This document shows, piece after piece, positions 4,721 through 64,000 of a stretch of 64,000 nt of DNA. A program made the position numbers and the translations under genes. Source of the DNA: Trichoplax adhaerens (taxonomy: Eukaryota; Animalia; Placozoa); the NCBI RefSeq assembly GCF_000150275.1, contig NW_002060946.1, positions 4,235,454 to 4,299,453 of the forward strand. Reading direction: 5' to 3'. Each line of letters starts with the position of its first letter. The first letter of the stretch is position 1. The notes under the pieces were generated by a model. That model saw nothing but the letters and a program-made list of their open reading frames with translations, had not been told where the DNA came from and did not search any database.

Positions 4721-6566
4721 GATAATAATCTAATTTCAGATCAAGTCCAAATTGGAAAGTTGCTATTACCCAAATTATAAATACTCCTAGAGTAAAGCAG
4801 AAGAAGTAATTTTACATTCAAATACCGCTAACTAGTTACTGCAAATAATAAGGAAAATCAATTTTCCTGCCTAATAGATGGAAAATATCTAGTTACCGTT
4901 TGATATACGCGCAATTTGATGTGAATGTTTAATGGGCAATTCCTCTATTCTCATCATGAACAATAGACCACCATATGTCGGCATGAAACACAATTATTCT
5001 ACAATATGGCCATATACCCAATTAGAAGGCGAAACGAGTTGCATGAGGTCATAAATTGCTATGAATAGGAAAGCTTAAGGAAGTTAATAGCAATATTTGA
5101 GTTTAAGAGCTACTTGCAACTGATTGCACTTAGAATGCCATAATTGAAACTGTAGTAATATCGCGCGAGAATGCTATAGTAAGGTAAGATATAAGCCTAA
5201 TATGAGGACTACCTTGGTAACCTTTTGTATCTTTGAATCAGAAATATAGATATACAGTGATACAGGAGTATGACTACTCCTGTCATCCATTTTACATGAT
5301 GACAACAATTTTAATCGTTGATCTCTTATTAAGTCGGAGAGAGTTACAGAAAGTATACAAGTAGGAATTACAACTTTGCATTTTAATATAGAAACATCAA
5401 GCAAATAGGCACCATAGAGATTCAGTTCTAGCTGAAATCATATCCATATTTCTCGGACACTTGGTTAATTAATTCTGAAATTACTAGGTAGAAGTAAGTC
5501 TAGTAAGAATAAAATTATAAAGAATGGTATACTCATTGGATGAGAAATCAGCTAAAGTTAAAAATTAAGAGAAAGTGTAGAAATTATCCATTATTAAATA
5601 CGATAACTATCTAGCCTATGCTAGGCCGTTATAAGAAGTGGCCGATAGATCAACCTTCGAACTATTTTCCAGACTAAACTAAAAGACGATATTGGACCAC
5701 GGATAAAATGATAAACTAAGTATTACGAAGCTAATTAATTAATTTATGAGCATGCAGGTTAATATACTTAATTGATGAGTATTTTAAACGCATTTTGTAG
5801 ATAAACAAATACAACATACATAGAATAAGAAACTCATGATAAAAAGAACATTGATATTTTATTACAATACTTTAGGTTCCAAAAATCAAAATTTTTGCAA
5901 TTTCTAACATTCATATTGAAACTGTGGCATCTGGTTAATTAACAGTTTTATTCGTAGAAAGTATAAATACTAATACTAGCTAAGCAAAATATGCCAATAG
6001 ACACTTTCATCTTGTTTAATATTTGAGATACGGTAATTTAGAGCTAAGATTTTTGTTTACGGAATACACGTTTTCAAGATAGCTTAAGAATTAAAATGCT
6101 AACACCTTACTAATATCATATCTTGCAAGTAGGATACTATATATTCAAGTTTGGTTCTAAATCATCAATTAAAGCAAAATTAGTTAAATTTATAATGATA
6201 AAACTGCTGCTTTAATAAAGCAAGAAATGATAACTAATCATATTTATGACAATTTTACTCAAATGTTTATACCTTCATTAGACTTAGGCTAAATAAATTA
6301 ATATACTATATACTATGCGAACATAACAACGGAAAGCGTAAACTAAAATAATAGATAATCATAAATTATTTTCCAACTAATTGATCATTGCATCTCTCTT
6401 TTCTCTTTAGTAAAGAGATACAAGAATATAAACTCAGCAAGAACGCATGTCATGCGTATTGAGATAGGATTGAGATTGTTGTTTAGGTATGCATTCTTAA
6501 TTAAATCATTTTAGAAAGAAAAAAGAAAAATGACACTGTCAACAACGTCTAAAATGATACTAGAAA

Positions 6567-8447
6567 TTAATGATAAACAAACTTTTGACGTGCTTGAATA
6601 TACTCTTCAGTCTGAAAGCATTGTTGCATCTGATCCAATTCGTAATTTCGATGGTCATGCAATAATTGAAACCAATCATCAGTCATTAATTTCCTCTTCT
6701 TATCCAATATACTTTGCACCTGTTCATCATCTTGTGTTAACTTATTGGCTTCAACACTTAACATTTGATCGAAATGATCATGATCTTTAGCAATTAGTTT
6801 ATCAAACATGCCTATTTTAACAGCTTGACGCGCTAACATTGGCACGACATTATTAGTAATTTGTCTAGCTCTCTCTTGGCCGACACGTTTAGGTAAGAAA
6901 TAGGTATAATATTCAGAACCGAATAACCCCATCGATTTATAGTGCGGGTTAAGGATGACAGCATCATGCGACCAAACCAAGTCAGCAGCTAATGCCATCA
7001 TAACACCACCTGCTCCGGCGTTACCTTGCATAGCTGATATGACAACTTTATCACGAATAGAGAAAATCTCTTTAACTACATCATCGATTGCATTAATGTT
7101 TCGCCATGATTCTAATGCAGGATCTTTAGAGGCTTCAATGGTATTCAGGTTAATACCATTGGAGAAGAAATTGTAGCCACCACATAATACAATTGTATTA
7201 ATCAATTGATCTTGGCTACAGCGGTGTATAGCTTGGCGTAGACGTAAACATTGCTCAGTACTCATAGCCCCATTATAAAATTCGAAATGAATATAAGCGA
7301 TGTTGCCTTGACGGTTTATCCAAATTTCTTGAAAGGTCTCAGGCCGATACCCGTATGAATAATATTCCATCTTAGGTGCGACTTCTTCTACACCTTCTAA
7401 TTCACATTGTGATAAAACTGATGTGGAAGGCAATTTGATAAATTGCCTACCATGGCTTGCTTTCATATGGCTGATCCATACACCTTGATTGTCGACAGTC
7501 TTGAATAGAACTGCTCCACTACGTTTAGCTATGATATCACCTGGTTTAGCGTCGGTCCGTTTATTAATTAATTCTGGCGATTTTTCAACATGAGCACCGA
7601 AAATTAATCGCCTAATGTTTGCACCATGAGCTGTATTTTCGGTATACATAATAGCGCCCGGTTGAGAATCTGACATACGAACAGTGTTAGCAATCTTATG
7701 AGCGGACATAGTTTTCCAATCGACAAGTCGATCATTCCACGCCATTTTGGCACGAAAAGATCCCTTGACATCCGGTTGATCATAATCTAATGGTCTCGGT
7801 GGTATTTCAAGACGGAATTGGTCAACAGCTTGTAATAAAGCTCGTACAGCAGCTTGAACAATTTCATTTTGATATAAGCTCGATTTGGTAGCTTGTCGCT
7901 TTATTGGGAATGTAGCTGTACTTGAAACATCACCAGCATCTATTTCGTCGGCCGCTTGTAATACAGTTACTCCCCATTCCGGCAATTGATCATGTAATGC
8001 CCAATCGATTGAGTGTATCCCACGATCGCCAACAATGCCGGGATGAACAATCCAGCAAGGTGTGGATCGAGCAGATGGTTCATCATATAACTGTGGTGGT
8101 ATGCGCTTCGTCAAAAATGGGCAAATGATAATATCGGGATTTTCACGTTCAGCGCATTCTATCATCGTATCTGGACTTGGATTTTCAACAATTTCGACAC
8201 GATGGCCACGAGTGGTTAATTCAAGGTAAGCACGTTGAGTTAATGAATTATTGGAATTGCAGAAAAACAAGATATTATAACGATCGTGAACCTCTTCACC
8301 TATAACAGCTGATTCTGCAGTTTTTCTTGCAGTGACGGCCAGTTGATGGATTGGAGCAGCTGCTTGATGATGAATAACTCGTCGCAATAAGGACGTAGTT
8401 GATGAAAATTGGCGTTTACATAACTGATGTAGCTGACTTTTCAACAT
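6567..8447 (-). CDS. hoxX: HoxX/HypX-like protein (N-terminal formyltransferase fold fused to C-terminal crotonase/enoyl-CoA hydratase fold), 626 aa, intronless, with predicted mitochondrial presequence
   Basis: Family motifs present: NSLTQR, CPFL, VHPGIVGDRG..SIDWAL, WGVTVLQA..EIDAG, SDSQPG, FYNGAMSTEQC.RL, FFSNGINLNTIEA, GNAGAGGVMMALAAD, LNPHYKSMGLFGSEY.TYFLPKRVG, and C-terminal ARQKFVY. The ~56-aa N-terminal extension is rich in R/K/S/L and has no acidic residue before position 45. Confidence 0.93.
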   Translation of the reverse strand: MLKSQLHQLCKRQFSSTTSLLRRVIHHQAAAPIHQLAVTARKTAESAVIGEEVHDRYNILFFCNSNNSLTQRAYLELTTRGHRVEIVENPSPDTMIECAERENPDIIICPFLTKRIPPQLYDEPSARSTPCWIVHPGIVGDRGIHSIDWALHDQLPEWGVTVLQAADEIDAGDVSSTATFPIKRQATKSSLYQNEIVQAAVRALLQAVDQFRLEIPPRPLDYDQPDVKGSFRAKMAWNDRLVDWKTMSAHKIANTVRMSDSQPGAIMYTENTAHGANIRRLIFGAHVEKSPELINKRTDAKPGDIIAKRSGAVLFKTVDNQGVWISHMKASHGRQFIKLPSTSVLSQCELEGVEEVAPKMEYYSYGYRPETFQEIWINRQGNIAYIHFEFYNGAMSTEQCLRLRQAIHRCSQDQLINTIVLCGGYNFFSNGINLNTIEASKDPALESWRNINAIDDVVKEIFSIRDKVVISAMQGNAGAGGVMMALAADLVWSHDAVILNPHYKSMGLFGSEYYTYFLPKRVGQERARQITNNVVPMLARQAVKIGMFDKLIAKDHDHFDQMLSVEANKLTQDDEQVQSILDKKRKLMTDDWFQLLHDHRNYELDQMQQCFQTEEYIQARQKFVYH

Positions 8448-10705
8448 TATGAAATAATATTCTGGATTAGGCGTATTTAGAAAATGACTTCAAGGATCGT
8501 TGATTGATTATCCTAATTGTATGAATTGAATAAAAAATGACAATTACTTCCGGTAAACGTTATTTCTGTAATTGATTTGACAGATTTTATGCTATTGCGT
8601 ATGTATATATATTTTGATTTGGGTAAAATAAAATGGAGATTTGGCTAAATAAAATGAAGTAATACAATCTGCTAAACTAGATCGAAAGACAATTAAATTA
8701 TTGACTTGGTGTGTCTTAATTTATATTAAAAACTCGGCAATTCAATTTTTGATGCCAATTTATAGTTAATGACAACAGTACAACTCCTACTCTATGATTT
8801 CTTCGACAAGTGGGTAGTTAGTGTAGCCTTAGAATAAATTATAGGTTATTTTGAAGAGACTAAATATTTAATATTGGTCATATTGATAGGCCACAGAAAT
8901 ATGCGGAATAATTTATATCACTTGTATTATCATGTTAATTGGGCTAGTTAATGTGTTTAGACGATCACCATAACATTGAACTTTGAACTTTATTACTAGA
9001 GCTTATTAAATGGCAATTAATTATTTAATTAACTTAAAAACATAGTTTACTATCTAATGATATACTGTAATTACTATTTAGACGAATAAAATAAAATCTA
9101 GGTTAATTTTTCAGCTTTTACATGCAACTTTCGCGTGTAACGGAGAAAAATTAGATCTGTGTCCAATTGCACAGTAATTAACCCTTGACCTCATTTCTGA
9201 AACATGAATTGTGATTAAGACAGAAAGTTTAAGATTTGCTCCCCACATGTTGCTCAAATATAGCAATACCATTATTAAAGTACAGTTTAAGTACGATATC
9301 AATTACAAATTGAGGTGTAAAGTAGCAGGAATAAAAGGAAATAAAATGAACTTTCCGTCCAATCGGATATCATTTCAATTTACGGAGAGAATTATTGATA
9401 TCGTTAATGTTGATTAATTCTTCGTATATTGGAAGTCTTTCCATAGAAAATATTATCAACATATCGACTATTAAATTTAGCTATTCTTATTTTAATATCG
9501 GGACGTTATTTTCTCTATATCTTCAGTGAACAATGTCATGAATTCGACTCAATATCTAGGACATTATATAAATTGATCAGATGGAATGTCTAATTCAACG
9601 ATATTAACACATTGTTTGAAATTTATTTACATTTAAGGACAGTAACTTAAATTGGCAATTTTGATAGCGATAGCCTGCAATTTTTGCTTGTAAAGCATTA
9701 ATACGGAATGATCATAACTTGACCTAAGGTTACCTTTAGAACAATGAGGGTTAAAAAGTAATGGAAGAAATGGTTACACCCAAGCCAAAAAGAATTCTTA
9801 TTTAAGCGTTATTCGCGAATCCTTTTTCAAATAATGACTAAACAAGAAGCTAAAGCTGATCACGTGTGGTTAATTCCGTTGTTGTATGGTTATATCGGTT
9901 ATAATAGTCTTTTTAAGTAAATAAGAATATAAACTAAAGCTAATCATTTTCTCTCAATCTTATTCTTGTTTCAAGTTGGTTAGACTAAATCCTTTTAAAT
10001 AACTGATGAACATAAGCGAAATTAAATCGAATGTCCTTTAACATCGAAACAGTACGCGCATATCTAATAAATACGGGTTTAGCATTCTCCCAATTTTTAC
10101 ATCAGCTGCAAAAAGTTCTAGTTCAACTAACTTATATAAGCACAGGCTTTACTGAAGGAAAATTACTTAAAAATATTTCAATTAAATGCTCTAGTTGTAT
10201 ATAATGAGATTATTGAATAAATCTGGAGTTAAGCTTATCTGAGTATAAAAGAAATTAAAATATTTCGCTATTATGATTCTAATCAACGAAATAAAAACCC
10301 AATCAATTATTTGTTCTGTTATCACACTCGTTTATTATCCAGCTACGGTAATTTAATGAGTACTATTAACTTGTCCTGTTCGTTATTATTTAGCAATAGC
10401 AGTCTAATTAGTAATATTCAATTTAATACGACAAAAGAGCACGAATACATGATGACATTGGCTAGATTATCATAAAAGATAATAGATAAAGAAATTATGG
10501 GTACAAGACGATAGTATAATTGTTAGGAAGTTAATTCAGTTTCATTAAAAAGTAACTTTATCGTCCTATTGTACTCTTTATAACTGATTTTAACATCGAC
10601 GAGAGTTAGGACAAAAATTTTATTTCTTGAAAGATTATAATTGTCTACGATTTCCTGCATGAAAGTTAATACTCAAATTTTATCCTCTTGACCTGAGGAG
10701 AAAAA

Positions 10706-10802
10706 TCTATATATAATGTCGAATGGTAATACTATCTGTTAATTATTAACTAATGGGTACATTATCGTAAACCGTCAGCAAAGCGACGGGAGTTTGGACT
10801 AG
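10706..10802 (+). mobile_element. Miniature non-autonomous Helitron (97 bp, both termini present)
   Basis: Structure is a|TCTATATATAA...CCGTCAGCAAAGCGACGG (hairpin 10772-10789), 9 nt, then CTAG|t. It sits between A and T with no target-site duplication. A near-identical 3' portion recurs at about 59455-59525. Confidence 0.8.
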
Positions 10803-13109
10803 TTTCAATAAAATGGATCTTTTGCAGTCCATAAGTTGAGAGTTCATGTTCCATTGTAGACTTTTACATGTCAAGGTCAAATAGAATTAGCCCCTTAAGT
10901 GTTTTCGAGAGAGGATTATAAGGTGCACCTATAATCATTCCCCTTAAGTAATCTAGAGTTAGCGTAGCGAATTTTTGCTGCACCGATCACACTTTATGTT
11001 CAATTAGGATGTTTAGATATTCAAATGATTACTTAATAAAGACATTCAATTCATAATAATTTCTAGTATTTAGGGTTATGATAATATTATCCCACCATAG
11101 GCTCTACCAATAGATATGCGTTTTTTTTAAAATAGATATCTTATATGGTTATTATCTATCAGATCAATCACTGGTTAATGACCTTCTCTAGCATGCTGCA
11201 ATATTCGGTTCCTATAGCCTTGCAGCATATAATAAAGTGCTAACGCCAGCTATCTAAGACTGCGCAAATAATCAAATCATTAAATTAACAGATACATAGT
11301 GGTTTGTGACATAGTCGATCTTGTTGCAGACTTTTTTAAAACGGATATTCAAATAATTATGTAGCGAATGCATAGGTACCATGCTTAATGCAACGCTATT
11401 TTTATGGTATATGATGCTATCTTACTATAGTCTTGCTACAGACACTAATTCCATCTTTCGGCTACAGCAGGAATGCTAACTATCTGATAGCACTCCTTGA
11501 TATATTAAGCCAATAGCGGAAATAGTGCAAAATGCCCGCAAGATTGGTTTTACTGTCAGTAAGACAATACTAGGTCAATATGCTTGGCTAAAATCCGCAA
11601 AAAAATCAAAACAACGAGCTAGCTTATACTCATACGAAATCGATCATGATTTGGCTCCATTCCAGCTTACTACGCAAATCGATAACGCTATTTTAGACAT
11701 CCTCTTACATTTAAGAAAGTTGATAAAAGTTAAAACTTCTTCAGCAATTTCACTTGTTTACTAATCTTAATAATTGGAAATAAAGCTATAAATCACCAGC
11801 CAGACTCGTTGGAAAAGCTGATCAACTATCTGTTCCATGAGTAAAGTTGAACCAAATTTTCTATTTTAATTCATCTTACCTAACACTGAGGAAGGATAAC
11901 GGAACTTTTAGGCTCGTTGTTGGTTCCAAAGCAAGTAAAGAATGATCGTAAAGCTATAATTAGAATGTTTATATAGGTGCTAATCAGTCTCAGCTATTGC
12001 TAGTCTGATTAAACAATTGTGGTAATAGTTTTCAATATCAATGACGCTTGCTAAATTTTAGGCGGTACGGTAGTTTTTAGGAGAAAAGCTCTTAATCTAA
12101 AATAATTTCACAAAAGTCATATTGAAAAGATAACTTTTTCCACTTGCATGGAGGATAATGAGCATAGTTAAGACTCTCATTATTTCTTACTTGTTTGACT
12201 ATTAATCTTCCTACATAATCCCGCCTAGAACATGTTGCATTGTTTCCTTTTATTGAACAGAATGTTCTTCAATCAATAATCAAATAGAAAAGAATTGCCT
12301 ATATGGTAGATAAGCTAACTCCAAAGTGTTGATAGCCTCCCCCTCTAATGTCACTCAAAAGAAAATTGATCCATCAATCAATCTGTCAATTCGTCAGGTA
12401 CAAAGTTCAAGGAAGGGAATCATGGACGTGATTGGGAATGGTTGAACTCAAAATTATCTACGAACGGATTATGATTAATAAATATTATTTTAGATTTAAA
12501 AGATCAATCGTCGCCCTGGCACTGACACCGATGTCGCCATAAAGGATCATAAAGTCAATAAATTACAAGAAAATTAAATAACATCAAAGTACAGCGATGT
12601 CGTAGATTGTACTTTAAACTATCTGAAATTGGTATTAAATTTCCGTTGACCTGGATCGAATGATATTTTACATTGGTAAATATCTAATTTTAAATGAATC
12701 ACTAAACCTTAAACGATTTACTAAATAGAAATTAATTACCCTTATTGACTCCTTTACTTTGACGACTACTTATCGATTATTGAAACATCTACAATTCTCA
12801 TCACTTTCAATATTGCCGCAATTACCTTTACCAATTGGCTAGGTGATTGATTAAAATTTTTAATGTAGATTACTGCCACTTATCATACGAATTAGCCAAA
12901 GCATTTGTGGAATTCTTTAAATTAAACACTGCTAAGAAAACAAAGCATGTTATAACGTTGTTAGCGTAAGATTTTTAGCAAAGATTGGCGATGCGGGACT
13001 TGAAAGACAATATTAAAAAAGGATTAAATCAAAAATTTGGAATGATGGAATGCCATTGGCGATTGATTTGACGGAACAAAATAGGTGAATCTCACTACAA
13101 GAGTTATTC

Positions 13110-15769: not shown

Positions 15770-16850
15770 ATTGAAATCAATTGAATATAAATTAACCAGT
15801 TTTACTGGCTCTGATCAATAGTATTTTCAGTCACTAGTTGATTCCTAAAGATTAGATATCAATTTAGAATAAATAAACAACTTTAGTACGCTTATGGTCA
15901 ATTTTATAATTGAATACCACCGCCATTTTATCGTCCACTGTTCTCTGATCGATAAAATTACTTAAGTCACCGGGTTGTATTCTAAAGGCTCTATTTCCAT
16001 TTAGAATAAATGAACTATTTTACGCTTATGATCAATTTTATAACTGAACACTGTAGCCATTTCATCGTCCACTATGCGTAGTCCCATTCTAAATATTTAG
16101 TATCAATTTAGAATAAATGAACTATTTTGCACTCATGATCAATTTTATAGCTAAACACCGCAGCTATTCTAATGTTCACTAAAATAACCTAATCTCTTAA
16201 GAGTATTATGCAGCCGCTGAGTTAAATTCTAAAGAATTGAAATCAATTTAACTAAATGAACCATTTTAGGCTCATGCAATACCCGATTATCCTCACTCAG
16301 TCACTGAGCTCGTTCATTTCTTTTGAATTTAATAAACCATTTTAGGCCTATTCTAAAACTACCGGATCAACAGTATCACTCAGTCGCTGACTTTCGTTTT
16401 AAAAGACTCTGTATCAGTTTACAATAAATGAACGACCTTATGATCAATTTGATAGTTAAATACCGTAGCTATTCCAAAGTTTGCTCTATAACCTGATCAA
16501 CAGTATTACTCAGTCACTGATTTTCGTTTTAAAGACTATGTATCAATTTACAATAAATGAACGACCTTACGATCAGTTTTATAGTTAAACACCGTAGCTA
16601 TTCCAATGCTTGCTATATAACCTGATCAACAGTGTTACTCAGTCACTGTGTTTAATTGGAAATACCTGATCGACCGTGTTACGGTGCTTAATCATTCAGT
16701 TCAATTTAGCATGCACGAATTATTTTTACTTAGCATTCATTTCAATGAAACAGTTTAGGCCATGATCAATTTATAATAAAACACAGCAATTCCACAAGCT
16801 CACTACCATTACCTGATCAATTGTATTACTCACCAGTTTAAGTAGCTTGA
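15770..16850. repeat. Degenerate ~120-bp tandem array (about 8 copies)
   Basis: 'tatcaatttagaataaatgaac...atgatcaattttatag.taaacaccg.agctatt...acctgatcaacagtattactcagtcactg' recurs. The copies at about 16410 and 16540 are nearly identical. Confidence 0.8.
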
Positions 16851-19800
16851 ATTTTGACTTTGTCGTTCAAGTTATTTTCAATCGATGCGATTGAAAACGT
16901 AAGCGAGAAAGAGCAAATTAACGGATCGATCGATCAGTATCACTTTTCCACTGGTTTTTCTCGACAGGAAAATCAGAGAGGCTCGCCCAAGGGGTAAAAT
17001 TGGAGACAATAAATTGTTACGTGAAATTTCTGTTGCAAGACCAGTCTTGGTTAACGAATGGCTAATACCTTTGCATTTAAAAGCTAATATCGTTGTTGTT
17101 CAACTTGTTTCGATGTACTGTAAAATAACTTGATAGATAAGAAGAAATATTACAAGGATTTCAACATTCCATTGACAAATTTCTGACTGTATAGGCTTAT
17201 TTCTATCGCTTTACCTGGTCTACTTATCATCCACTTTTATCTACTAGAAAGATATTACGTTCATTCCGATGATATCGGTACGCAAATATCGTCAATGTTG
17301 ATGACGTGATGATCATCGAGCTGGTAGTGATGCATGTGCCAACATGCATCATCATATAATTAAGTGTAAGAGAATTATTTTTCCTTCCGCCCAACCTTTC
17401 CTGAACATTCCATAACTATTACTATTATCTGTATCCAATGAAGTTATTAGAATAATAAAATATGAGCTTATTTTAGCAACGACGTCTTATATGAGCCATT
17501 TCTGACTGACGATTTACTGAATATATCATTGTCCATATGAATAAAATAATCCTTTTGCTTGTAATCATGCTTGATGTTTGTTGTAGACTGTTAGAATATC
17601 GAACAGTTATTCTTGAACTATTTGGGCAGAATATAGATTGATCAATATACAGCAGATACCCATGCAAAATTCATTGAACCACTTCCTCTTGCATCATAAT
17701 GATATTGCAGTTTTTAGATTTGCACGAATAGAGTATTACATGGGGAAGTGATTTTTTTTATGAACTAGTTTGGTAGAACATGGATTGGTCAAGATAGATA
17801 CTAATGCAACATTAATGGAGTTCCTTCCTCTTGCCTAGAATCTTATGATTGTAGTTCGTCATTTTTTGGACGAAAAAAGTAGAATAAGAAGGAAATGATT
17901 TCACCAATGACTCTAGCCATGAAATTTGTCTACCGGTCAGATAAAAGGTCAGAAACTTTGCTACTGAAATACCCCTACTTATTCAAGCCTTCCGCATAGT
18001 TTTCTTTTTACATGCGCTTGATAGTTTTATGAAAAACTTCTAAATAAACAACGGAAATCAAGCAATGATTATCCAGTCAAAATATTCCCACTGGAGGTAA
18101 GTGATGAATACGATACTATATAGAGTAATGTGGTAATTTCATATATAATTGATCACCAAAACATTAAGGCAACGATGGCTTCAATTTTAAATACTAGATG
18201 ATGCCTGTAGTCTATGGATTTATAGACGCGCTTACTCGTATCTTAAAGTTGTTGTTATAATATACATGTACAGTTCCCTACACCGTTTCCGTGAAATGTC
18301 CAAAGCCAATCAACGATACAGTATAGCTATCGATTCGTAACTGTAAACAAGGACTCCAGCATCATCAAGGATTGCCTGCAATCTCCTATTTTCAATACCT
18401 TTGTTCGTCACCTATGGAAAGAGTAACAACTTTCAAATTGCCCTACTGGCGTAGGATCAAATCGTCCACACAGAAGCAATGTCGTTGTGTTATTTAGCGA
18501 TTTGCAGTATTCAGAATTAAAAGTACTACCCAATACTTTGACTGTCAGTAAGGAAATTACATGTCGATATAGATTCAATATCATTCAATTATTTTACAGT
18601 TCACCTTTGACCATGGTATTGTCGTTCAAAGTGAAAGAAAATTTCTCCTATCTACCGTACAAAAAATGCTCCAAAAGTACGACTAGCCATCGTTTTGACT
18701 GCCAGCGAAAAATTTGCATGTCAGCATAGAGTCCATTTCTGCATAAATGTCCTATCGTTAACTGATAGCGCTTTTATGGTTGATAAATATATTTCATCCA
18801 GATAGTTTACGTATGTGGAATTGACATAATTATAATAACAGACTTTTTACTGCCATAATTAATTAATTACACGTCATGCAGATACAGTACATGTAGTGCA
18901 TGCCAAATAAACTCCACGGTCTTATTCTCATTTTATTTCACATTTGAAAGGTATTTTAGCTTGCAAGCGATCGAAATACAATATTTATTGTATCTACCAA
19001 ATGAACGTAGCAGCACATCAATGAACAGCAATCATAATGGATGAAATTAGCTCATTTTCAATATACCGTATATTCAGTAAGGGATGAAGAAGTAGGTAAT
19101 CAGTATAATGGGGACATTGTACAATTTCAGTTGCTGGTCTCTCCAATCTACAGTATTAATTAAAATACAGTCATCATCAAGCGAAAATGCGTCTAGTATG
19201 CATAACACATTTTTGCTATCAAAACTATTCGTCATCGTCATAAAATAACTGGTTTATCCAGAATAGAAAGGCAATTGATACTGTTGCAATATTTATTACT
19301 ACACAGTACAGTACTTTAGAAACCTTTAAGCTAACGATTTGTAATCTAATCTTGTTGACGTCAAGAGCATACCAAGTAATCGCTAGATAACTGCCACAGA
19401 TTAATTGGGTACACGTCAGTAGTACTGTACTGTATGGTATCATTATCGTCCATAAAAATAGAAAGAAAATGAAAATTTATTTGTGCTACTCTGTATTATT
19501 ATCTTGCAATGTAATGCAAGGTTTTACCCAGTGACGATTTTTACTGTATTATCACTAAAGTGATGAAAGTATAAACTGATTTTATTGAAAATTGCTAACT
19601 GGCTACATACCTGGAGCAAAATATTTTACGTTACAAATGGCAACGATTTTATAATCCAATTTGGGTCCATATTCGTCCTCTGAATCACCTCTCGCTTTGA
19701 TCGATAAAAGAGCACTTTGTACTAGTGAGAACAACATTGCCCAGTGGCCATTTTCTAACCTTGGTATTAAGAGATTTTTCTTTGGTTTCGATACATTTAA

Positions 19801-27272: not shown

Positions 27273-27980
27273 ATGGAATTGCACAAGTATTCATTACTAG
27301 TCTTAATCTCTGTTACAGCCATCCTCATTCCAAATTGTCAAAATGCATCAGTAGCAAAGAGATCAGCAACGGATGACGCAGGGAAACTCACCCATCCAAT
27401 ACAAGCATTCGCAGAAATACTTCAAAAGCTTCCTGATACTTGCAACCTACCTAACTTCAACACTACCGATATTAATCTATTAGAATATGCTAGAAAAAAA
27501 GTTGGAGAATCAAGATTTATAGATGCCGTCACAAAAATGATAATTAGTGATTTGGCTAAAAATAATCAAAAATTATTGTTACATCAATTTATTTTATATC
27601 CAAAAATTTTGAATACGTCTCTGTCGCTCAGGAATGTATTTATCAACAGGAATAGCAAGAATGCCTCTGTACAAGAATCAAAAGCATTATTCAGATATTA
27701 CTTAGCACTAGCTACTAATATAACTGCTAAATTTGATGACAAGATTCTTACAAAGGGAAGTAGAGAATGCAAATCTTTATTGTTAAAGGCCAATTATGTG
27801 ATTTATTATGTAAAACAGCTATTTAACTTCAATGAAAACAGTAGCCCTAAATTCCTTATCCAAGACAAAAAAAAATTAGGATTTGGCCTTGTTTATATGA
27901 CATCTCCCCAAAGTGGTATTTCTTCGCGTATGCATCTAGCTTTACTTTATCAAATTTTGGAGGAATTCATCAGCCCGTAG
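27273..27980 (+). CDS. Secreted alpha-helical glycoprotein of unknown family, paralogue 1 (235 aa, intronless)
   Basis: Signal peptide MELHKYSLLVLISVTAILIPNCQNA, a KR dibasic site and several N-x-S/T sequons. It shares C.LP..NT, ILYP.IL, N.NS...V, YYL.L, P.FL.Q and YQ.LEEF with the ORFs at 35073 and 44766. Confidence 0.88.
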   Translation: MELHKYSLLVLISVTAILIPNCQNASVAKRSATDDAGKLTHPIQAFAEILQKLPDTCNLPNFNTTDINLLEYARKKVGESRFIDAVTKMIISDLAKNNQKLLLHQFILYPKILNTSLSLRNVFINRNSKNASVQESKALFRYYLALATNITAKFDDKILTKGSRECKSLLLKANYVIYYVKQLFNFNENSSPKFLIQDKKKLGFGLVYMTSPQSGISSRMHLALLYQILEEFISP

Positions 27981-32110: not shown

Positions 32111-35072
32111 GCTAGCTATACGTTGATGTTCGTATTTAAGCAATAATTACATAACAAAATGAGATATCTGATTTTATACGGTTATACGGTTATTTAGCTT
32201 AAAACCCTTATATGCCCAAGTTGGAGTCAAAATGACCCCACTTGCTCATAAAGTTGTCATTAAAATTTTTATTTATGATTCGATTTTAATTACTTCTTAG
32301 TTAACTTCATTAGAGTTATTTCAATAATTTTCATCCTTTCTTATGTTGTTGACTTATTTCTCAGCAAGAGTAATGCGACGTTAAAGCTATTTGTGTTGTT
32401 GACAGTTAATATTTTCATCACAGTCTAATTAAAATATTGAACAAGCATAGACACTAATCTACGATAATAATTATATTTTATTAGTAGTTCTTGATTTACA
32501 TATCGGATATGTTAAGCTAGAGTATTTAACCGGCAAAGAATTCCTGTATCGATGAAAAGACTCTGATATCAAGGCATATCGATCATTTAATTTCAATATT
32601 CGCTTTCTTAAGAGCTGTATATTTACAATGATGCTTTAAATAGTCTGGCCGCAAAAAAAAACATCAACTCTCATTTGCATTAACATTTAAACTAGAGTAA
32701 CCTAGCGTTACGTACGATTTGCAAATTTGAAAAATTTTTATTTACATTATAATATTTAATTATATCAGCTCAAATATAATGTATATGCAAAGGTACTCAA
32801 TGCAGTACTGTGACCTGTAAATCAATAAATCAATATTCGATGAAAGCATGATAAATAGGATTCTAAAATTAATGAATGATACAGCTGGCTGCATAGTTCC
32901 GATTAATCTGTATGTACTTTACGGCATATAGTACTGTAAATTACATTAACCCAAATTGGCCGAGATGTTTCGAAGACAACTAATTGTAAAGTATTCGGTA
33001 ATCTAATAGTCAAGGATCCAAGAAAATGAAGCGCACAATGATTGGATCAGCGTTAAAGTAAGTGCAATCGGCTTAAGCATTAATCGATATAAAATTAAGC
33101 TACACAATACTAATCTAGACAAGTGCAAACAATTTACCATATCGTGGTCGCTATAAATAATATGATACGGTATATTGATACAACTTTCTCAACCATATGT
33201 ATTATTATATTAATTTTCAGCACAAAGTTAACAGCAAGCTAAAAATTATTGGTATTTTCATTAAAATCTGTAGCTTACAGACGTTTAAATACACTGGCGA
33301 TAGACTGAGTGACGGGTGTCTAGATTGCAAATAGAGTATTTAAAGAGTAATACAGTAGTAAGAATAATAACTATCAATCACATTTTATAATTAGTTAATT
33401 ATCTTGGTGTCGATGCCTTATTCGTTGGACCGGCATTTTGCTATCTATGGTACTTAAGAAAGCGTATACTGTGCGACGAAACTTAATTATCGAGGAATCA
33501 ATGACCCCGAATCATTAGAAATGAATTCACATCGTGCATCACATGTCGATATATGTTGAACGTAAAGAACAGCCGCCCATTTGTGCTGGGAGGATGTCGC
33601 AAATAATTTAGTTAGCAAATATTAATGAGCAATAATATGAATTATCTTACTCTAAAGCAATATTACTACACCATCATATTATTGTACTGTACCGTAGTAG
33701 TACATTAATCATTAGTGGTTAGAAAAGCTATAAAGGCGCACATTGTTTGAATATAGGCCATCTTCCCTCTTCTTCTTCCTTACGTATTTTACCAGTAAGT
33801 TTAACTTCGATAAAATATATTTTTATCAATGATCAAACAAAGACAAAAGCTTTATGCAAGTGAAAACGTCATTCTGCTTATTGCAGCTTGGTGTGAGTAA
33901 ATGAGAGACCCTTCATAGTCTGCCAAAATTAAAATACATGAGATTCTTTGAAATAGACGTAATAACTACTCTTCCTAATTATGCACTGCATGCTCTATGC
34001 TAAAAACCCTGCAGCTGCTTGCTTGCTAATGATATACAGCGAGAACGAAGTGAAATGATGGTGATCATTGCATGGCATTCGGGGTATTAAAAACTCCACG
34101 CCTACATCACAATTTTCCAGGTCCGGTATTTTTACTTTAATAATTATAAATAATTAAAACATCATTTTAACAGAGACAACATACTCGTATAGAACAGCAA
34201 ATAGTATACTACATACTTTTAGTGCGGTGTACTTACTACAAAGTCTGTAATCGTTTTCTAGCTTATATAGAGTAGACCAATGGGTTATCAACTTTTAGCT
34301 TAGTGGCCTCTATCAATCTTTTTAATAGTCCCCATTTCTCTAGATTATTATTTCTTGCTGTTGACGCGAAAATTAATTAAATAAAGAATGTAGAAACGCC
34401 ATCAATCTGACTATTATTTTACAGTACGCCTTAGTTAACAAACCAATCGGGAAATTAATCAATTTAAAGTTGACCGATTACTTTGTAACCTGCCATTACC
34501 AGCGGGCGATTTATGACTTGACAGGATGGTAAATAAATGGACCGGATGAATAAAGTGTAACAATTATATTGATGAATTCTATTCATTATATTGTACATAT
34601 TAAAGTGGTGTACTCTACGGATTCTGCACAGTTACCCTTCAGAGGTAGAAAGAAATGAAAGAAAAAAATTGTTGATGCAGCAAGATATTACTGAAACAAT
34701 AACTAGAAAAGGAGAGGGACTGTCAATTTCAGTGTTGTCAACAATTCATTATAAAAAAGTGCAGAGGCTGACTACAAGTATTTCTCTGATCATTTTAACT
34801 TCACACCGTAACGGCACTCGGAAAGTAGTCACAAAGTAGGTTGCACACAGGACGGTGTACGCTTCAAGTCTTCCTATGCAGTTAAATAACCAGCAAAATG
34901 GGAAGCATCACATTTATACCAGTGATCAGGTACTAACCGGCTCTTTCTTCTCATCGCTAGAGTGCAACACATATATAAACTGTGGAACCGGTCCAATATC
35001 GCTAGTAAAATGTTTTGCAGCATCGCAAGTTGTACTGTACGAGTTACTAAATTTATTGGTCCAAAAGTGAAA

Positions 35073-35810
35073 ATGGATTGGTATTCATTGTTGGCTTTTA
35101 GTTGCATTATAACTATCATCATTCCTAGTGAAGGGAAGAATTTACGCTGCTGCGATGAGGAAGCTTGGAATGTAGGAAATTCTCAGTATTCAGTGAATTG
35201 CGATAGTGCAATTGCAGTATTGAAAGCAACCGTTCAAGCATTATCTGACAAGGATGATTGTAATTTGCCTAGCTACAATACTACAAATTTTGTGCCCTCA
35301 GCTTGCGGGAAAATAATTCAACAATCAAAATTTCCAAGTGCTGTCCTCGATGTCGTCATTAGAAATTTTCCAGTTAAGAACAAGACCCGACCGTCATATT
35401 GTGAAGACATTTTGTATCCCCGAATTTTAAATACTGTATCTCTTGATCATGTATTGAATAACAAAAATAGTACGAATGCCACCGTCGTAGTATCTCTTAA
35501 ATTATACCTATATTACTTGCAATTGTTATTCAGTACGACTTCTAAATATGTACGGAAATGTAGAAAGATTCCTGAAATTTGCGAATATAATTTCATCAAC
35601 AGTATTTTATGCCAAGTCAATCAGGTAACTGAACAAATACCAACTATTTGCTTCGGCGAAAAGGCTAACGTTAACCCCATATTCCTAAAGCAAAGTACGG
35701 AAGATATAGCATTTGTTCTTCTTCATGCTAAATCACCTCAAAATTGCAAGCCGTGGGACTTAGATTTGGCTTTAATATACCAGCTTTTGGAAGAATTTAA
35801 ATTTAAATAA
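35073..35810 (+). CDS. Secreted Cys-rich alpha-helical glycoprotein, paralogue 2 (245 aa from ATG 35073, intronless)
   Basis: The true start is probably gtgaaaATG GAT TGG, the same context as the paralogues, rather than the ORF-track start at 34962. Signal peptide MDWYSLLAFSCIITIIIPSEG. Family motifs CNLPSYNTTN, ILYPRIL, LYLYYLQLL, NPIFLKQ and LIYQLLEEF. Confidence 0.88.
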   Translation: MDWYSLLAFSCIITIIIPSEGKNLRCCDEEAWNVGNSQYSVNCDSAIAVLKATVQALSDKDDCNLPSYNTTNFVPSACGKIIQQSKFPSAVLDVVIRNFPVKNKTRPSYCEDILYPRILNTVSLDHVLNNKNSTNATVVVSLKLYLYYLQLLFSTTSKYVRKCRKIPEICEYNFINSILCQVNQVTEQIPTICFGEKANVNPIFLKQSTEDIAFVLLHAKSPQNCKPWDLDLALIYQLLEEFKFK

Positions 35811-44765: not shown

Positions 44766-45527
44766 ATGTATTTGTATTCATTATTAATCCTAAGTTATGT
44801 TATTGCCATCGCTATTCCCAGCAATGCAAAGGCTTTACGGTACCGGGATGAGAATGCTTCAATGCTTAAAAGTTCAACAAAGTCAAAACTCTGTTTAAAG
44901 TATATGCAAGGATTGCAAGCAGTTTTTCAACGATTATCTGATGTGAATATTTGTTCGTTTCCTAGGTATAATACTAGAAATTTTGAACTTCCGAACTGCG
45001 AAAAAGAGCAAACTTCACCATCGCCATTTACAGATACTTTCCTTGATATGGCTATTAGTAATTTGCCTTTTAATAATACAAATCAATCGTTATGTCGTAG
45101 GGATATCTTGTACCCTACAATTCTCGCTAATGTATCTTTCCACCATGCATTGATTAACAAGAACAGCACTGACGTTTCCGTACAATTATCTATTAAATTA
45201 TATCGATTTTACTTAAAACTGTTACACGCTATAGTTAATACAGACAGAAATAATAAGGTTCTTAAATTGGAGAAGATGTGCTCAATTCCATTCATGGATA
45301 CTAGTTTGGACGCCATCAACGTTGCAGCTCAAGAGATACCATTCAATTGCTTCGATTGCGAAAAGGACATCAATCCTATATTCCTTTACCAAAATACCAA
45401 AGATATTGCATTTGTTTTTCTTCATGCTCCATCCAACCAAAGTTGCGAACCATACCATTCAAGTGTCGTCTTGATGTATCAGCTGTTAAAAGAGTTCAAA
45501 TTTGAAAAATTAAACTCGCTTATATGA
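44766..45527 (+). CDS. Secreted Cys-rich alpha-helical glycoprotein, paralogue 3 (253 aa, intronless)
   Basis: Signal peptide MYLYSLLILSYVIAIAIPSNA. Motifs CSFPRYNTRN, DILYPTIL, INKNSTDVSV, LYRFYLKLL, NPIFLYQ, DIAFVFLHA and LMYQLLKEFKF. TATA-like box at about 44665. Confidence 0.88.
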   Translation: MYLYSLLILSYVIAIAIPSNAKALRYRDENASMLKSSTKSKLCLKYMQGLQAVFQRLSDVNICSFPRYNTRNFELPNCEKEQTSPSPFTDTFLDMAISNLPFNNTNQSLCRRDILYPTILANVSFHHALINKNSTDVSVQLSIKLYRFYLKLLHAIVNTDRNNKVLKLEKMCSIPFMDTSLDAINVAAQEIPFNCFDCEKDINPIFLYQNTKDIAFVFLHAPSNQSCEPYHSSVVLMYQLLKEFKFEKLNSLI

Positions 45528-62663: not shown

Positions 62664-64000
62664 CTATGCCTTCTTAATAAATGATGGATTAGAATGTTTG
62701 ACAGAATTTTCGATGTCTATCATCGTTGGACCCATACATTGTATTCCAAAATGGCCAATTTGACCACAATTGTAACAAGAAATACGAGTTTCACTAGGCA
62801 CTGGAGGTCTAGGAGTGGGAGGAAAATAAGGCCCATTATAGTAACCATTGGAAGTACCATTATGCAAAAAGAAGCTAGGCCCAAAATTTGTGTATGGTGG
62901 AGGGTAAGCTTGACGGAGATCGTACCAATGTTTCATTGGGATAAATTCTGATTGGTAAGCATTGCCACGATAGTCTCGACCTCGGTGATTATATCCCGGA
63001 TAAGAAGCGTTCAGAGGAAAAGCGCATTTGTTATCAAAGTGACCAATAGGCGGTGGAATCATTGTATTAACTGGAGACGTCGGTATTCTGCCGTTTATAG
63101 CATACATAGAAGGTACAGCAGTATAGAAATACTGTTCATCCCCACTTGGAGGCCTATCATCAATTTCACTATCGCCGTTTCCAGATCCTACACTTTCCAT
63201 ACTTTGATTCTTCTTCACGGGCTTACTGTGATTGAATTAAAATACATCTTAAAGATTATGTTGTGATAACATCATTTTACTACCGATAATTGTATAACAC
63301 AAATACTTCGTAACAATAAATTTAGAAAATTGTATGTGACTTTGCTAGTTAATCTCATACTAGTATCAGAGCACAGCATGAGGTCATAGTCGTAGTACAT
63401 ACTTTTGATAATCTTTCTTGTTTTGAACTTTATTGGAATCACCACTTGTTAACTAGGTTAATTCAGGTAGATTGTATGGAAACAATAATGAAAATCGTAA
63501 TAAATTATTAGTAATAATTATTAGCGATGAGTAAAAGATTACCAATATTCTAAGTAGTCTTCCAAAATGTGTAAAATACTCGTATAAAAATCAAAGTATA
63601 TTGCATCAGTATACATATATACCCCTTTATGTATTACGGTGTCATTTTCCGACTCGCCATTAATATGTAACCCATCCAACCATTCCGTAACGTCTCTTCG
63701 GCGAATGCCATTACTAGATGATGAGTATGAGTCAATTGCTTTTTGCATCAGATCATTAATTTCAGCAGGTATAGTACCATCGTATGGTGCGTTTGTTCCA
63801 TCTGTACGATAACGAACGGACATAAAGCTATTTAAATTGATGCTTTTTGTAACATTTATATCGAAATGGCTTAAATTATATATATTATCTATACTATATA
63901 TTAATATACAGTATACTAATTATTAAGACACATTTAAAAGTTAATTTTACCAGTAGAGCTGTTAAAAAAGTTGCACACTAAATCGGAGGTAAGGATTTGG
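62664..64000 (-). CDS. 3' part of a ZCCHC2/ZCCHC14-like protein with a C-terminal CCHC zinc knuckle. Exons: 63951->64000, 63623-63801, 63403-63452, 62664-63225. The gene continues beyond the window
   Basis: The terminal exon encodes a Pro/Tyr/Gly-rich low-complexity region followed by SCYNCGQIGHFGIQCMGPTM (CX2CX4HX4C), resembling the SCYNCG..GH.AQDC.Q.SM tail of ZCCHC2/14. Upstream exons join in frame via GT-AG. Confidence 0.72.

Follow-up and report, generated by a model that had tools for sequence, protein, structure and literature searches.

HypX in the placozoan Trichoplax adhaerens: a candidate carbon monoxide synthase, probably mitochondrial, in an animal without a detected NiFe hydrogenase

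In bacteria, HypX (HoxX) is the aerobic carbon monoxide (CO) synthase that serves the NiFe-hydrogenase cofactor. What, then, might such an enzyme do in an animal? The question is raised by an open reading frame (ORF) on the minus strand of a 64,000-nucleotide (nt) stretch of the Trichoplax adhaerens genome (contig NW_002060946.1, positions 4,235,454 to 4,299,453; hereafter the window), which a preliminary description, made from the letters alone, had taken for a mitochondria-targeted HypX repurposed for CO production. We found that this ORF (Table 1) encodes a complete HypX with all of the known catalytic residues and the key residues for binding coenzyme A (CoA). That the protein is catalytically intact, imported into mitochondria and makes free CO from 10-formyl-tetrahydrofolate (10-formyl-THF) is the reading that its sequence leads us to favour, with slightly better than even credence.

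The HypX ORF is the sole ORF of more than 300 amino acids (aa) in the window, which is gene-poor with a GC content of 32%. Its earlier reading as a full-length, two-domain HoxX/HypX was confirmed by the order of Pfam domains along the chain (Formyl_trans_N, PF00551; Formyl_trans_C, PF02911; ECH_1, PF00378), by a phmmer match in the PDB between query residues 57-612 and Aquifex aeolicus HypX (6J0P; E 1.7e-118), and by an AlphaFold2 model (mean per-residue confidence, pLDDT, 85.7; input of 22 homologues) that Foldseek superposed on 6J0P/6J1E across both domains, with a template-modelling score, taken relative to the crystal chain, of 0.91-0.95 and a root-mean-square deviation of 2.0-2.4 Å. After the HypX structures, the next PDB matches were 10-formyl-THF dehydrogenase and crotonases, weaker by more than 100 orders of magnitude. 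Identity to the bacterial enzymes of Aquifex (6J0P) and Cupriavidus necator was ~39-42% over the whole length, with the two-domain architecture shared.

In Aquifex HypX the formyl-transfer triad is His74/Asp80/Asp109 and the decarbonylation pair is Tyr416/Glu426, while Ser194, Gln195 and Asn306 contact the 3'-phosphate of CoA and affect CoA affinity (PMC6802093). We mapped these residues by alignment to the PDB chain and to an Aquifex-type HypX with matching numbering. The triad corresponds to His135/Asp141/Asp170 of the Trichoplax protein with the identical +6/+35 spacing, as the preliminary description had stated, and the pair to Tyr503/Glu512. Retention of the pair had likewise been proposed, and it stands, although its spacing is +9 rather than the +10 of Aquifex. 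Spacing of +9 was present in 63 of 63 eukaryote-clade proteins checked and in one quarter of bacterial ones; the +9/+10 difference showed no correlation with whether HypX is hydrogenase-linked or orphan and was rejected as a marker of this distinction. The five catalytic positions were invariant among the 120 best homologues, save for one sequence with a gap where the Tyr/Glu pair aligns. All three 3'-phosphate tethers are kept (Ser261, Gln262 and Asn392), as is the tunnel residue Ala392 (Ala479). Loss of catalytic or CoA-binding residues upon proper alignment had been named in advance as a finding that would speak against a functional enzyme; the catalytic five and the 3'-phosphate tethers are present.

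The gene is transcribed. Contigs of two runs recorded as RNA-seq cover 6089-8636, comprising the gene and its untranslated regions (UTRs), and leave the flanking DNA uncovered; as assembled contigs, they report presence and splicing, not expression level. Together with the spliced leaders described next, this coverage disposes of 'no expression', another of the outcomes that had been set against the proposal. In a contig of run X10, a loose end at 8516 matches 11884-11913 exactly (leader exon 1a), while in a contig of run X4 the first 30 letters of a 212-letter loose end match 16835-16864 exactly (leader exon 1b). The respective donors, TTAG/GTAAGA and ACTG/GTGAGT, are joined to a shared acceptor (…ATTAG/GATAATC) 65 nt upstream of the ATG. 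Leader exon 1b may be a first exon or an exon belonging to an upstream gene. With its upstream codons, the open frame spans 640 aa; since none of the three frames stays open across the 65-nt leader, no upstream exon can lengthen the protein, and the annotated Met is the start with either leader. RNA-run contigs were also found inside the 5'-UTR intron (Table 1), where they may reflect a nested transcribed unit or a retained intron. The ratio of nonsynonymous to synonymous substitution rates (dN/dS), calculated against an orthologue of 80% identity from marine metagenome contigs, was 0.083 over residues 57-626 as against 0.41 over residues 1-56, and 8 of 10 coding single-nucleotide polymorphisms among runs were synonymous. 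Taken together, these results establish HypX as a real, expressed nuclear gene under purifying selection.

The nearest relatives of the Trichoplax protein (49-54% identity) are eukaryotic, and two of them come from Mb-sized contigs that also carry fragments of nucleoporin exons; among 599 bacterial loci, identity did not exceed 44%. Named relatives include animals (Branchiostoma, corals, Nematostella, Hydra, bivalves, a tardigrade and a fungus gnat) as well as mosses, a liverwort, Chara and Ascophyllum. In a FastTree phylogeny of 180 sequences, named eukaryotes were separated from GTDB bacteria by one branch with a support of 100, and IQ-TREE (LG+C20 PMSF, 56 sequences) recovered the identical split; bacterial sampling consisted of the sequences closest to the query, and no root was inferred. 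Placozoans, amphioxus, cnidarians and bivalves formed an animal clade with a support of 97. Trichoplax HypX therefore falls within an ancient, monophyletic and patchily retained eukaryotic clade spanning animals, bryophytes, Chara, brown algae and protists. The HypX of Bradysia (fungus gnat) and Hypsibius (tardigrade) grouped with streptophyte and protist sequences, apart from the other animals, and Bradysia-type proteins have no presequence.

An all-eukaryote clade with an animal subclade within it indicates that the gene is old in eukaryotes and did not reach Trichoplax by recent transfer. An intron-free coding sequence, in a family known only from bacteria, could otherwise be taken for a recent bacterial acquisition, a contaminant of the assembly or a relic in decay. 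We regard these as very improbable, being contradicted by the position of the gene within an 8.16-Mb contig at host-like GC, its spliceosomal 5'-UTR introns and TATA box, the greater likeness to eukaryotic than to bacterial relatives, the well-supported animal clade and the purifying selection on the gene. The same tree does not sustain the idea of an enzyme repurposed in an animal: the clade also holds plants, algae and protists, and hydrogenase-free HypX is common in bacteria too. The label 'hydrogenase maturation factor HoxX-like' is carried by many invertebrate proteins at NCBI, as had been anticipated. In the literature searched we found no paper that discusses a eukaryotic HypX/HoxX, in keeping with the earlier remark that no function had been described. 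Thus the sequences were already known, and what is new is probably the setting of a known enzyme, which is eukaryotic, hydrogenase-free and probably mitochondrial.

Relative to the start of bacterial HypX, the Trichoplax protein carries an N-terminal extension of 56 aa. The preliminary description had called it basic and free of acidic residues over about that length; the length was right, but acidic residues are lacking only as far as residue 44 (Glu45, Glu51, Glu52 and Asp55 lie beyond). Residues 1-44 contain 7 Lys/Arg, 4 His and 8 Ser/Thr, and no hydrophobic core of the signal-peptide type. At residues 21-25 lies a phi-x-x-phi-phi motif, LRRVI, which reads LRCIV in the 80% orthologue; this motif and the first 22 residues are conserved there despite an identity of only 44% across the whole extension. 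Arg-rich 'MLR/MFR…' N-termini recur in HypX of amphioxus, corals, Nematostella and a brown alga. An extension of at least 18 aa was found in 60 of 90 eukaryote-clade proteins as compared to 1 of 24 bacterial-clade proteins, and 46 eukaryote-clade proteins satisfied a crude presequence rule.

These features point to mitochondrial import of Trichoplax HypX, which we consider likely. We also considered whether the protein is active outside mitochondria, with the extension serving as a disordered linker or for some other purpose. The maximal hydrophobic moment of the extension (0.60) was equalled by 30% of shuffles, the model gave residues 1-52 a pLDDT of less than 50 (the short helices that it drew at 2-12 and 18-26 stood near 30), and about one third of eukaryote-clade proteins, including those of Bradysia and one Hydra isoform, have no extension, indicating that a mitochondrial location is not universal. 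This alternative holds a real but minority share of our credence, set against the acid-free basic composition of residues 1-44, the conservation of the first 22 residues with their motif, and the recurrence of Arg-rich starts. In one metagenome assembly (ENA ERZ25069326), two HypX paralogues (L100 and L101) lie as uninterrupted single ORFs on Mb-sized, eukaryote-like contigs, one with a presequence-like N-terminus of 47 aa and the other with no more than 14 aa there; they may be mitochondrial and cytosolic copies in one organism.

The genome was searched as a 105.6-Mb draft assembly of 1,414 contigs by exon-by-exon hidden Markov model scans, and the absences reported here are limited accordingly. 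No match was found to the NiFe-hydrogenase large subunit (PF00374), HypD (PF01924) or HypC (PF01455) in the whole draft assembly, whereas bacterial controls were detected, in agreement with the earlier supposition that the animal has neither the hydrogenase nor the Hyp machinery. A single exon-wise scan for heme oxygenase (PF01126), which had also been proposed as a check, found no match, which we treat as a lead and not as proof of absence. The Trichoplax protein thus differs from bacterial HypX in its presequence-like extension, its nuclear gene with spliced leaders, its separate all-eukaryote clade, its spacing of the Tyr/Glu pair, its replaced Arg9 and Arg131 (discussed below) and the lack of a detected hydrogenase or HypCD.

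The genome does encode enzymes that make 10-formyl-THF (MTHFD-type and FTHFS), which we count as support for the substrate: THF dehydrogenase/cyclohydrolase is encoded at two loci, at one of which it is joined to FTHFS as in MTHFD1. HypX itself was the sole match in a genome scan for Formyl_trans_C, and no Aldedh match lay near any Formyl_trans_N locus that would denote ALDH1L, with 13 of 73 candidates scored. Elsewhere in the family, the C-terminus of HypX is fused to a complete FolD (methylene-THF dehydrogenase/cyclohydrolase) in several protists, Ascophyllum and a Chloroflexota clade. As these two groups of fusions fall to either side of the eukaryote/bacteria split, they seem to have had independent origins. 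A fusion partner that makes 10-formyl-THF speaks for an unchanged substrate and ties the HypX family to 10-formyl-THF supply.

From these features we propose a mechanism. A presequence of ~45-56 aa would take HypX into the mitochondrial matrix, where the N-domain (His135/Asp141/Asp170) would transfer the formyl group of 10-formyl-THF to tightly bound CoA. The CoA arm would then swing through an internal tunnel to the crotonase-like C-domain, in which Tyr503/Glu512 would decarbonylate formyl-CoA, yielding CO, THF and CoA overall. As no HypCD acceptor is present, the CO would be released free. It might be a deliberate product, serving as a signal or respiratory modulator, or else a by-product formed while surplus one-carbon units are drained, and THF recycled, without need of NADP. 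In the latter case HypX would be a counterpart of ALDH1L2, with CO emitted in place of CO2. The N-terminal hydrolase domain of ALDH1L1/ALDH1L2 has a homologous formyltransferase fold (E 7e-08; Foldseek matches), and the logic is shared, in that the formyl group of 10-formyl-THF passes to a pantetheine thiol and leaves as a one-carbon gas with regeneration of THF. Whereas ALDH1L employs a 4'-phosphopantetheine arm, NADP+ and an aldehyde-dehydrogenase domain to convert formyl to CO2, HypX would employ bound CoA and a crotonase-fold domain to release CO without a redox cofactor. A mitochondrial isoform of 10-formyl-THF dehydrogenase exists.

The same homology to the hydrolase domain of 10-formyl-THF dehydrogenase, along with the want of matches to a CO acceptor (HypC, HypD or the NiFe large subunit), would also suit an enzyme whose chemistry stops at formyl-CoA or is hydrolytic (formyl-CoA, formate or 10-formyl-THF deformylation), with little or no CO. 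We judge this unlikely. The pair equivalent to Tyr503/Glu512 is required for Ralstonia HypX function (PMC6802093) and is conserved in every eukaryotic homologue, the whole C-domain is strongly constrained (dN/dS as above), and CoA in HypX is a tightly held prosthetic arm, not a released product.

Bacterial genomes bear on whether CO made by HypX can serve anything other than a hydrogenase. At least 15 of 50 bacterial genomes with HypX had no PF00374 match at E up to 1e-3, and a further 11 of 30 had none at E up to 1e-20; hydrogenase-free carriers include cultured strains of Lysobacter, Peribacillus, Bacillus and Marinomonas. HypX is thus not strictly a hydrogenase accessory in bacteria either, and its retention without a NiFe hydrogenase implies a use of the product beyond cofactor assembly. 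Of 80 bacterial loci, 8 (Bacillota, Cyanobacteriota and Gammaproteobacteria) have, next to hypX and on the same strand, a gene for an MHYT-domain protein that stands alone or is joined to PAS-GGDEF-EAL or histidine-kinase modules; 6 of these 8 genomes have no convincing hydrogenase. ORFs called in the high-GC Lysobacter locus L045 had no Pfam match and were discarded as spurious. Experiments on the MHYT domain of CoxC have demonstrated that it senses CO by way of copper (PMC11347149). We found no paper in the literature searched that treats MHYT and HypX together. The hypX-MHYT pairs suggest that CO made by HypX and released free is put to use in its own right, and they may constitute a bacterial signalling module for self-made CO. 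Orphan bacterial HypX (Peribacillus, Cellvibrionaceae, Agarilytica and others) resembles that of Trichoplax in being hydrogenase-free, but belongs to the bacterial clade, lacks a presequence and often sits beside MHYT; no MHYT domain was found in the Trichoplax genome scan.

These bacterial pairs also bear on the suggestion that eukaryotic HypX is still a maturation factor, passing CO to some eukaryotic iron-carbonyl acceptor protein. Bacterial HypX forms complexes with HypC and HypD, and the conservation of HypX among eukaryotes suggests that it has a specific role. Against this, HypC, HypD and the NiFe large subunit were unmatched in the genome, the partner of bacterial orphan HypX is a gas sensor and not a metalloenzyme, and we know of no carbonyl-iron enzyme in animals. 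We consider such a role quite improbable.

Several points weigh against a mitochondrial, CO-producing HypX, beginning with the unexceptional hydrophobic moment and the clade members without an extension noted above. The case for mitochondrial targeting is one of composition, and CO synthesis by a eukaryotic HypX is something that we infer, albeit on good grounds. Free CO beside cytochrome oxidase would be inhibitory and would thus require a low or controlled flux. The draft state of the assembly bears on the absences. Finally, two CoA 5'-diphosphate contacts are changed (Arg9 to Ser65 and Arg131 to Gln193), while Gln15 is kept (Gln71) and the equivalent of Arg542 is of uncertain placement. In Aquifex these four contacts had no effect on affinity, and the quadruple mutant still bound CoA (PMC6802093).

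Table 1. Features of the HypX locus and its surroundings (positions in the window), with the bacterial and eukaryotic HypX loci discussed in the text
Feature	Position or locus	Strand	Remarks
HypX/HoxX coding sequence	6567..8447	-	626 codons plus TAA stop (6567-6569), uninterrupted; single copy in genome
N-terminal extension, codons 1-56	8280..8447	-	absent from bacterial HypX; presumed mitochondrial presequence
Formyltransferase-like N-domain, residues 57-351	7395..8279	-	His135 (8043-8045), Asp141 (8025-8027), Asp170 (7938-7940)
Inter-domain linker, residues 352-373	7329..7394	-	from alignment; equals Aquifex residues 269-287
Crotonase/enoyl-CoA-hydratase-like C-domain, residues 374-626	6570..7328	-	Asn392, Ala479, Tyr503 (6939-6941), Glu512 (6912-6914)
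HypX 3' UTR	6089..6566	-	RNA contig ends at 6089-6120; one extends to 5934
5'-UTR part of coding exon	8448..8512	-	no AUG; all three frames closed; in-frame TAA and TGA, 8490-8492
5'-UTR intron a	8513..11879	-	GT at 11878-11879, AG at 8513-8514
Leader exon 1a	11880..11941	-	at least 58-62 nt, no AUG; RNA contig
TATATAAA box	11968-11975	-	~30 nt upstream of RNA contig start of exon 1a
Alternative leader exon 1b	16834..17046	-	at least 212 nt; donor GTGAGT 16828-16833, joined to acceptor 8513
RNA-run contigs inside 5'-UTR intron	9008-9198; 9593-10283		
Paralogous single-exon ORFs	27273-27980; 34962-35810; 44766-45527	+	235-282 aa
ORF with zinc-knuckle motif	62664-63218	-	184 aa
HypX genomes without PF00374	L015, L016, L019, L021, L024, L025, L028, L034, L039, L045, L047, L053, L055, L068, L072		bacterial
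MHYT gene beside hypX	L015:9730-12153; L026:5191-7917; L053:7137-7961; L024:7001-7861; L038:7905-8672; L071:10675-12615; L084:6734-7507; L074:161-922		same strand as hypX
HypX-FolD fusions, protist/brown-alga group	P0043 (Ascophyllum), P0020, P0050, P0059, P0064, P0082, P0097		
HypX-FolD fusions, Chloroflexota	L018, L022, P0090		

Elsewhere in the window, three paralogous single-exon ORFs have signal-peptide-like starts and share motifs with N-glycosylation sites, and a further ORF encodes a Pro/Tyr/Asn-rich protein with a CCHC zinc-knuckle motif (CxxCxxxGHxxxxC). A scan of the window for the MARVEL domain (PF01284) found no match at E up to 0.1.

CO is acknowledged both as a gasotransmitter and as a modulator of respiration. 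Its accepted enzymatic source in animals is heme oxygenase, which would share CO as product with HypX but is unrelated to it in fold, substrate and compartment. That eukaryotic HypX is a folate-dependent CO synthase in its own right, and hence a second enzymatic route beside heme oxygenase, is a wider proposal that we advance tentatively and with more doubt than belief. If true, animals would have a second CO source wired to the folate one-carbon pool, probably in mitochondria, and HypX could be the main source of CO in Trichoplax, where no heme oxygenase was detected.

The gas floats of marine organisms offer a setting in which this proposal could matter. Kelp floats contain CO, and Wittenberg's work on CO in the Portuguese man-of-war's float reportedly involved folate. 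The 2026 Physalia genome paper cites it for the formation of float CO from L-serine in the gas gland (Wittenberg 1960); the paper itself ascribes the CO of the float to a heme oxygenase gained by horizontal transfer and mentions neither HoxX nor formyl-THF. Two siphonophore expression papers made no mention of HoxX, folate or formyl, and a search of the kelp CO literature found nothing relevant. A HypX gene is carried both by the hydrozoan Hydra and by Ascophyllum, a brown alga with bladders, in which it is fused to FolD. If eukaryotic HypX makes CO, the family would be an obvious candidate for the serine-derived CO of the man-of-war float, fitting the serine result better, and a candidate for the CO of kelp floats as well. 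A 65-year-old puzzle, that of CO from serine in siphonophore gas glands, would become testable, and the biogenic CO of algae and bryophytes would gain a candidate gene. HypX itself would have to be seen as a general CO synthase and no longer as a hydrogenase accessory, a view backed by the hydrogenase-less bacteria that carry hypX-MHYT.

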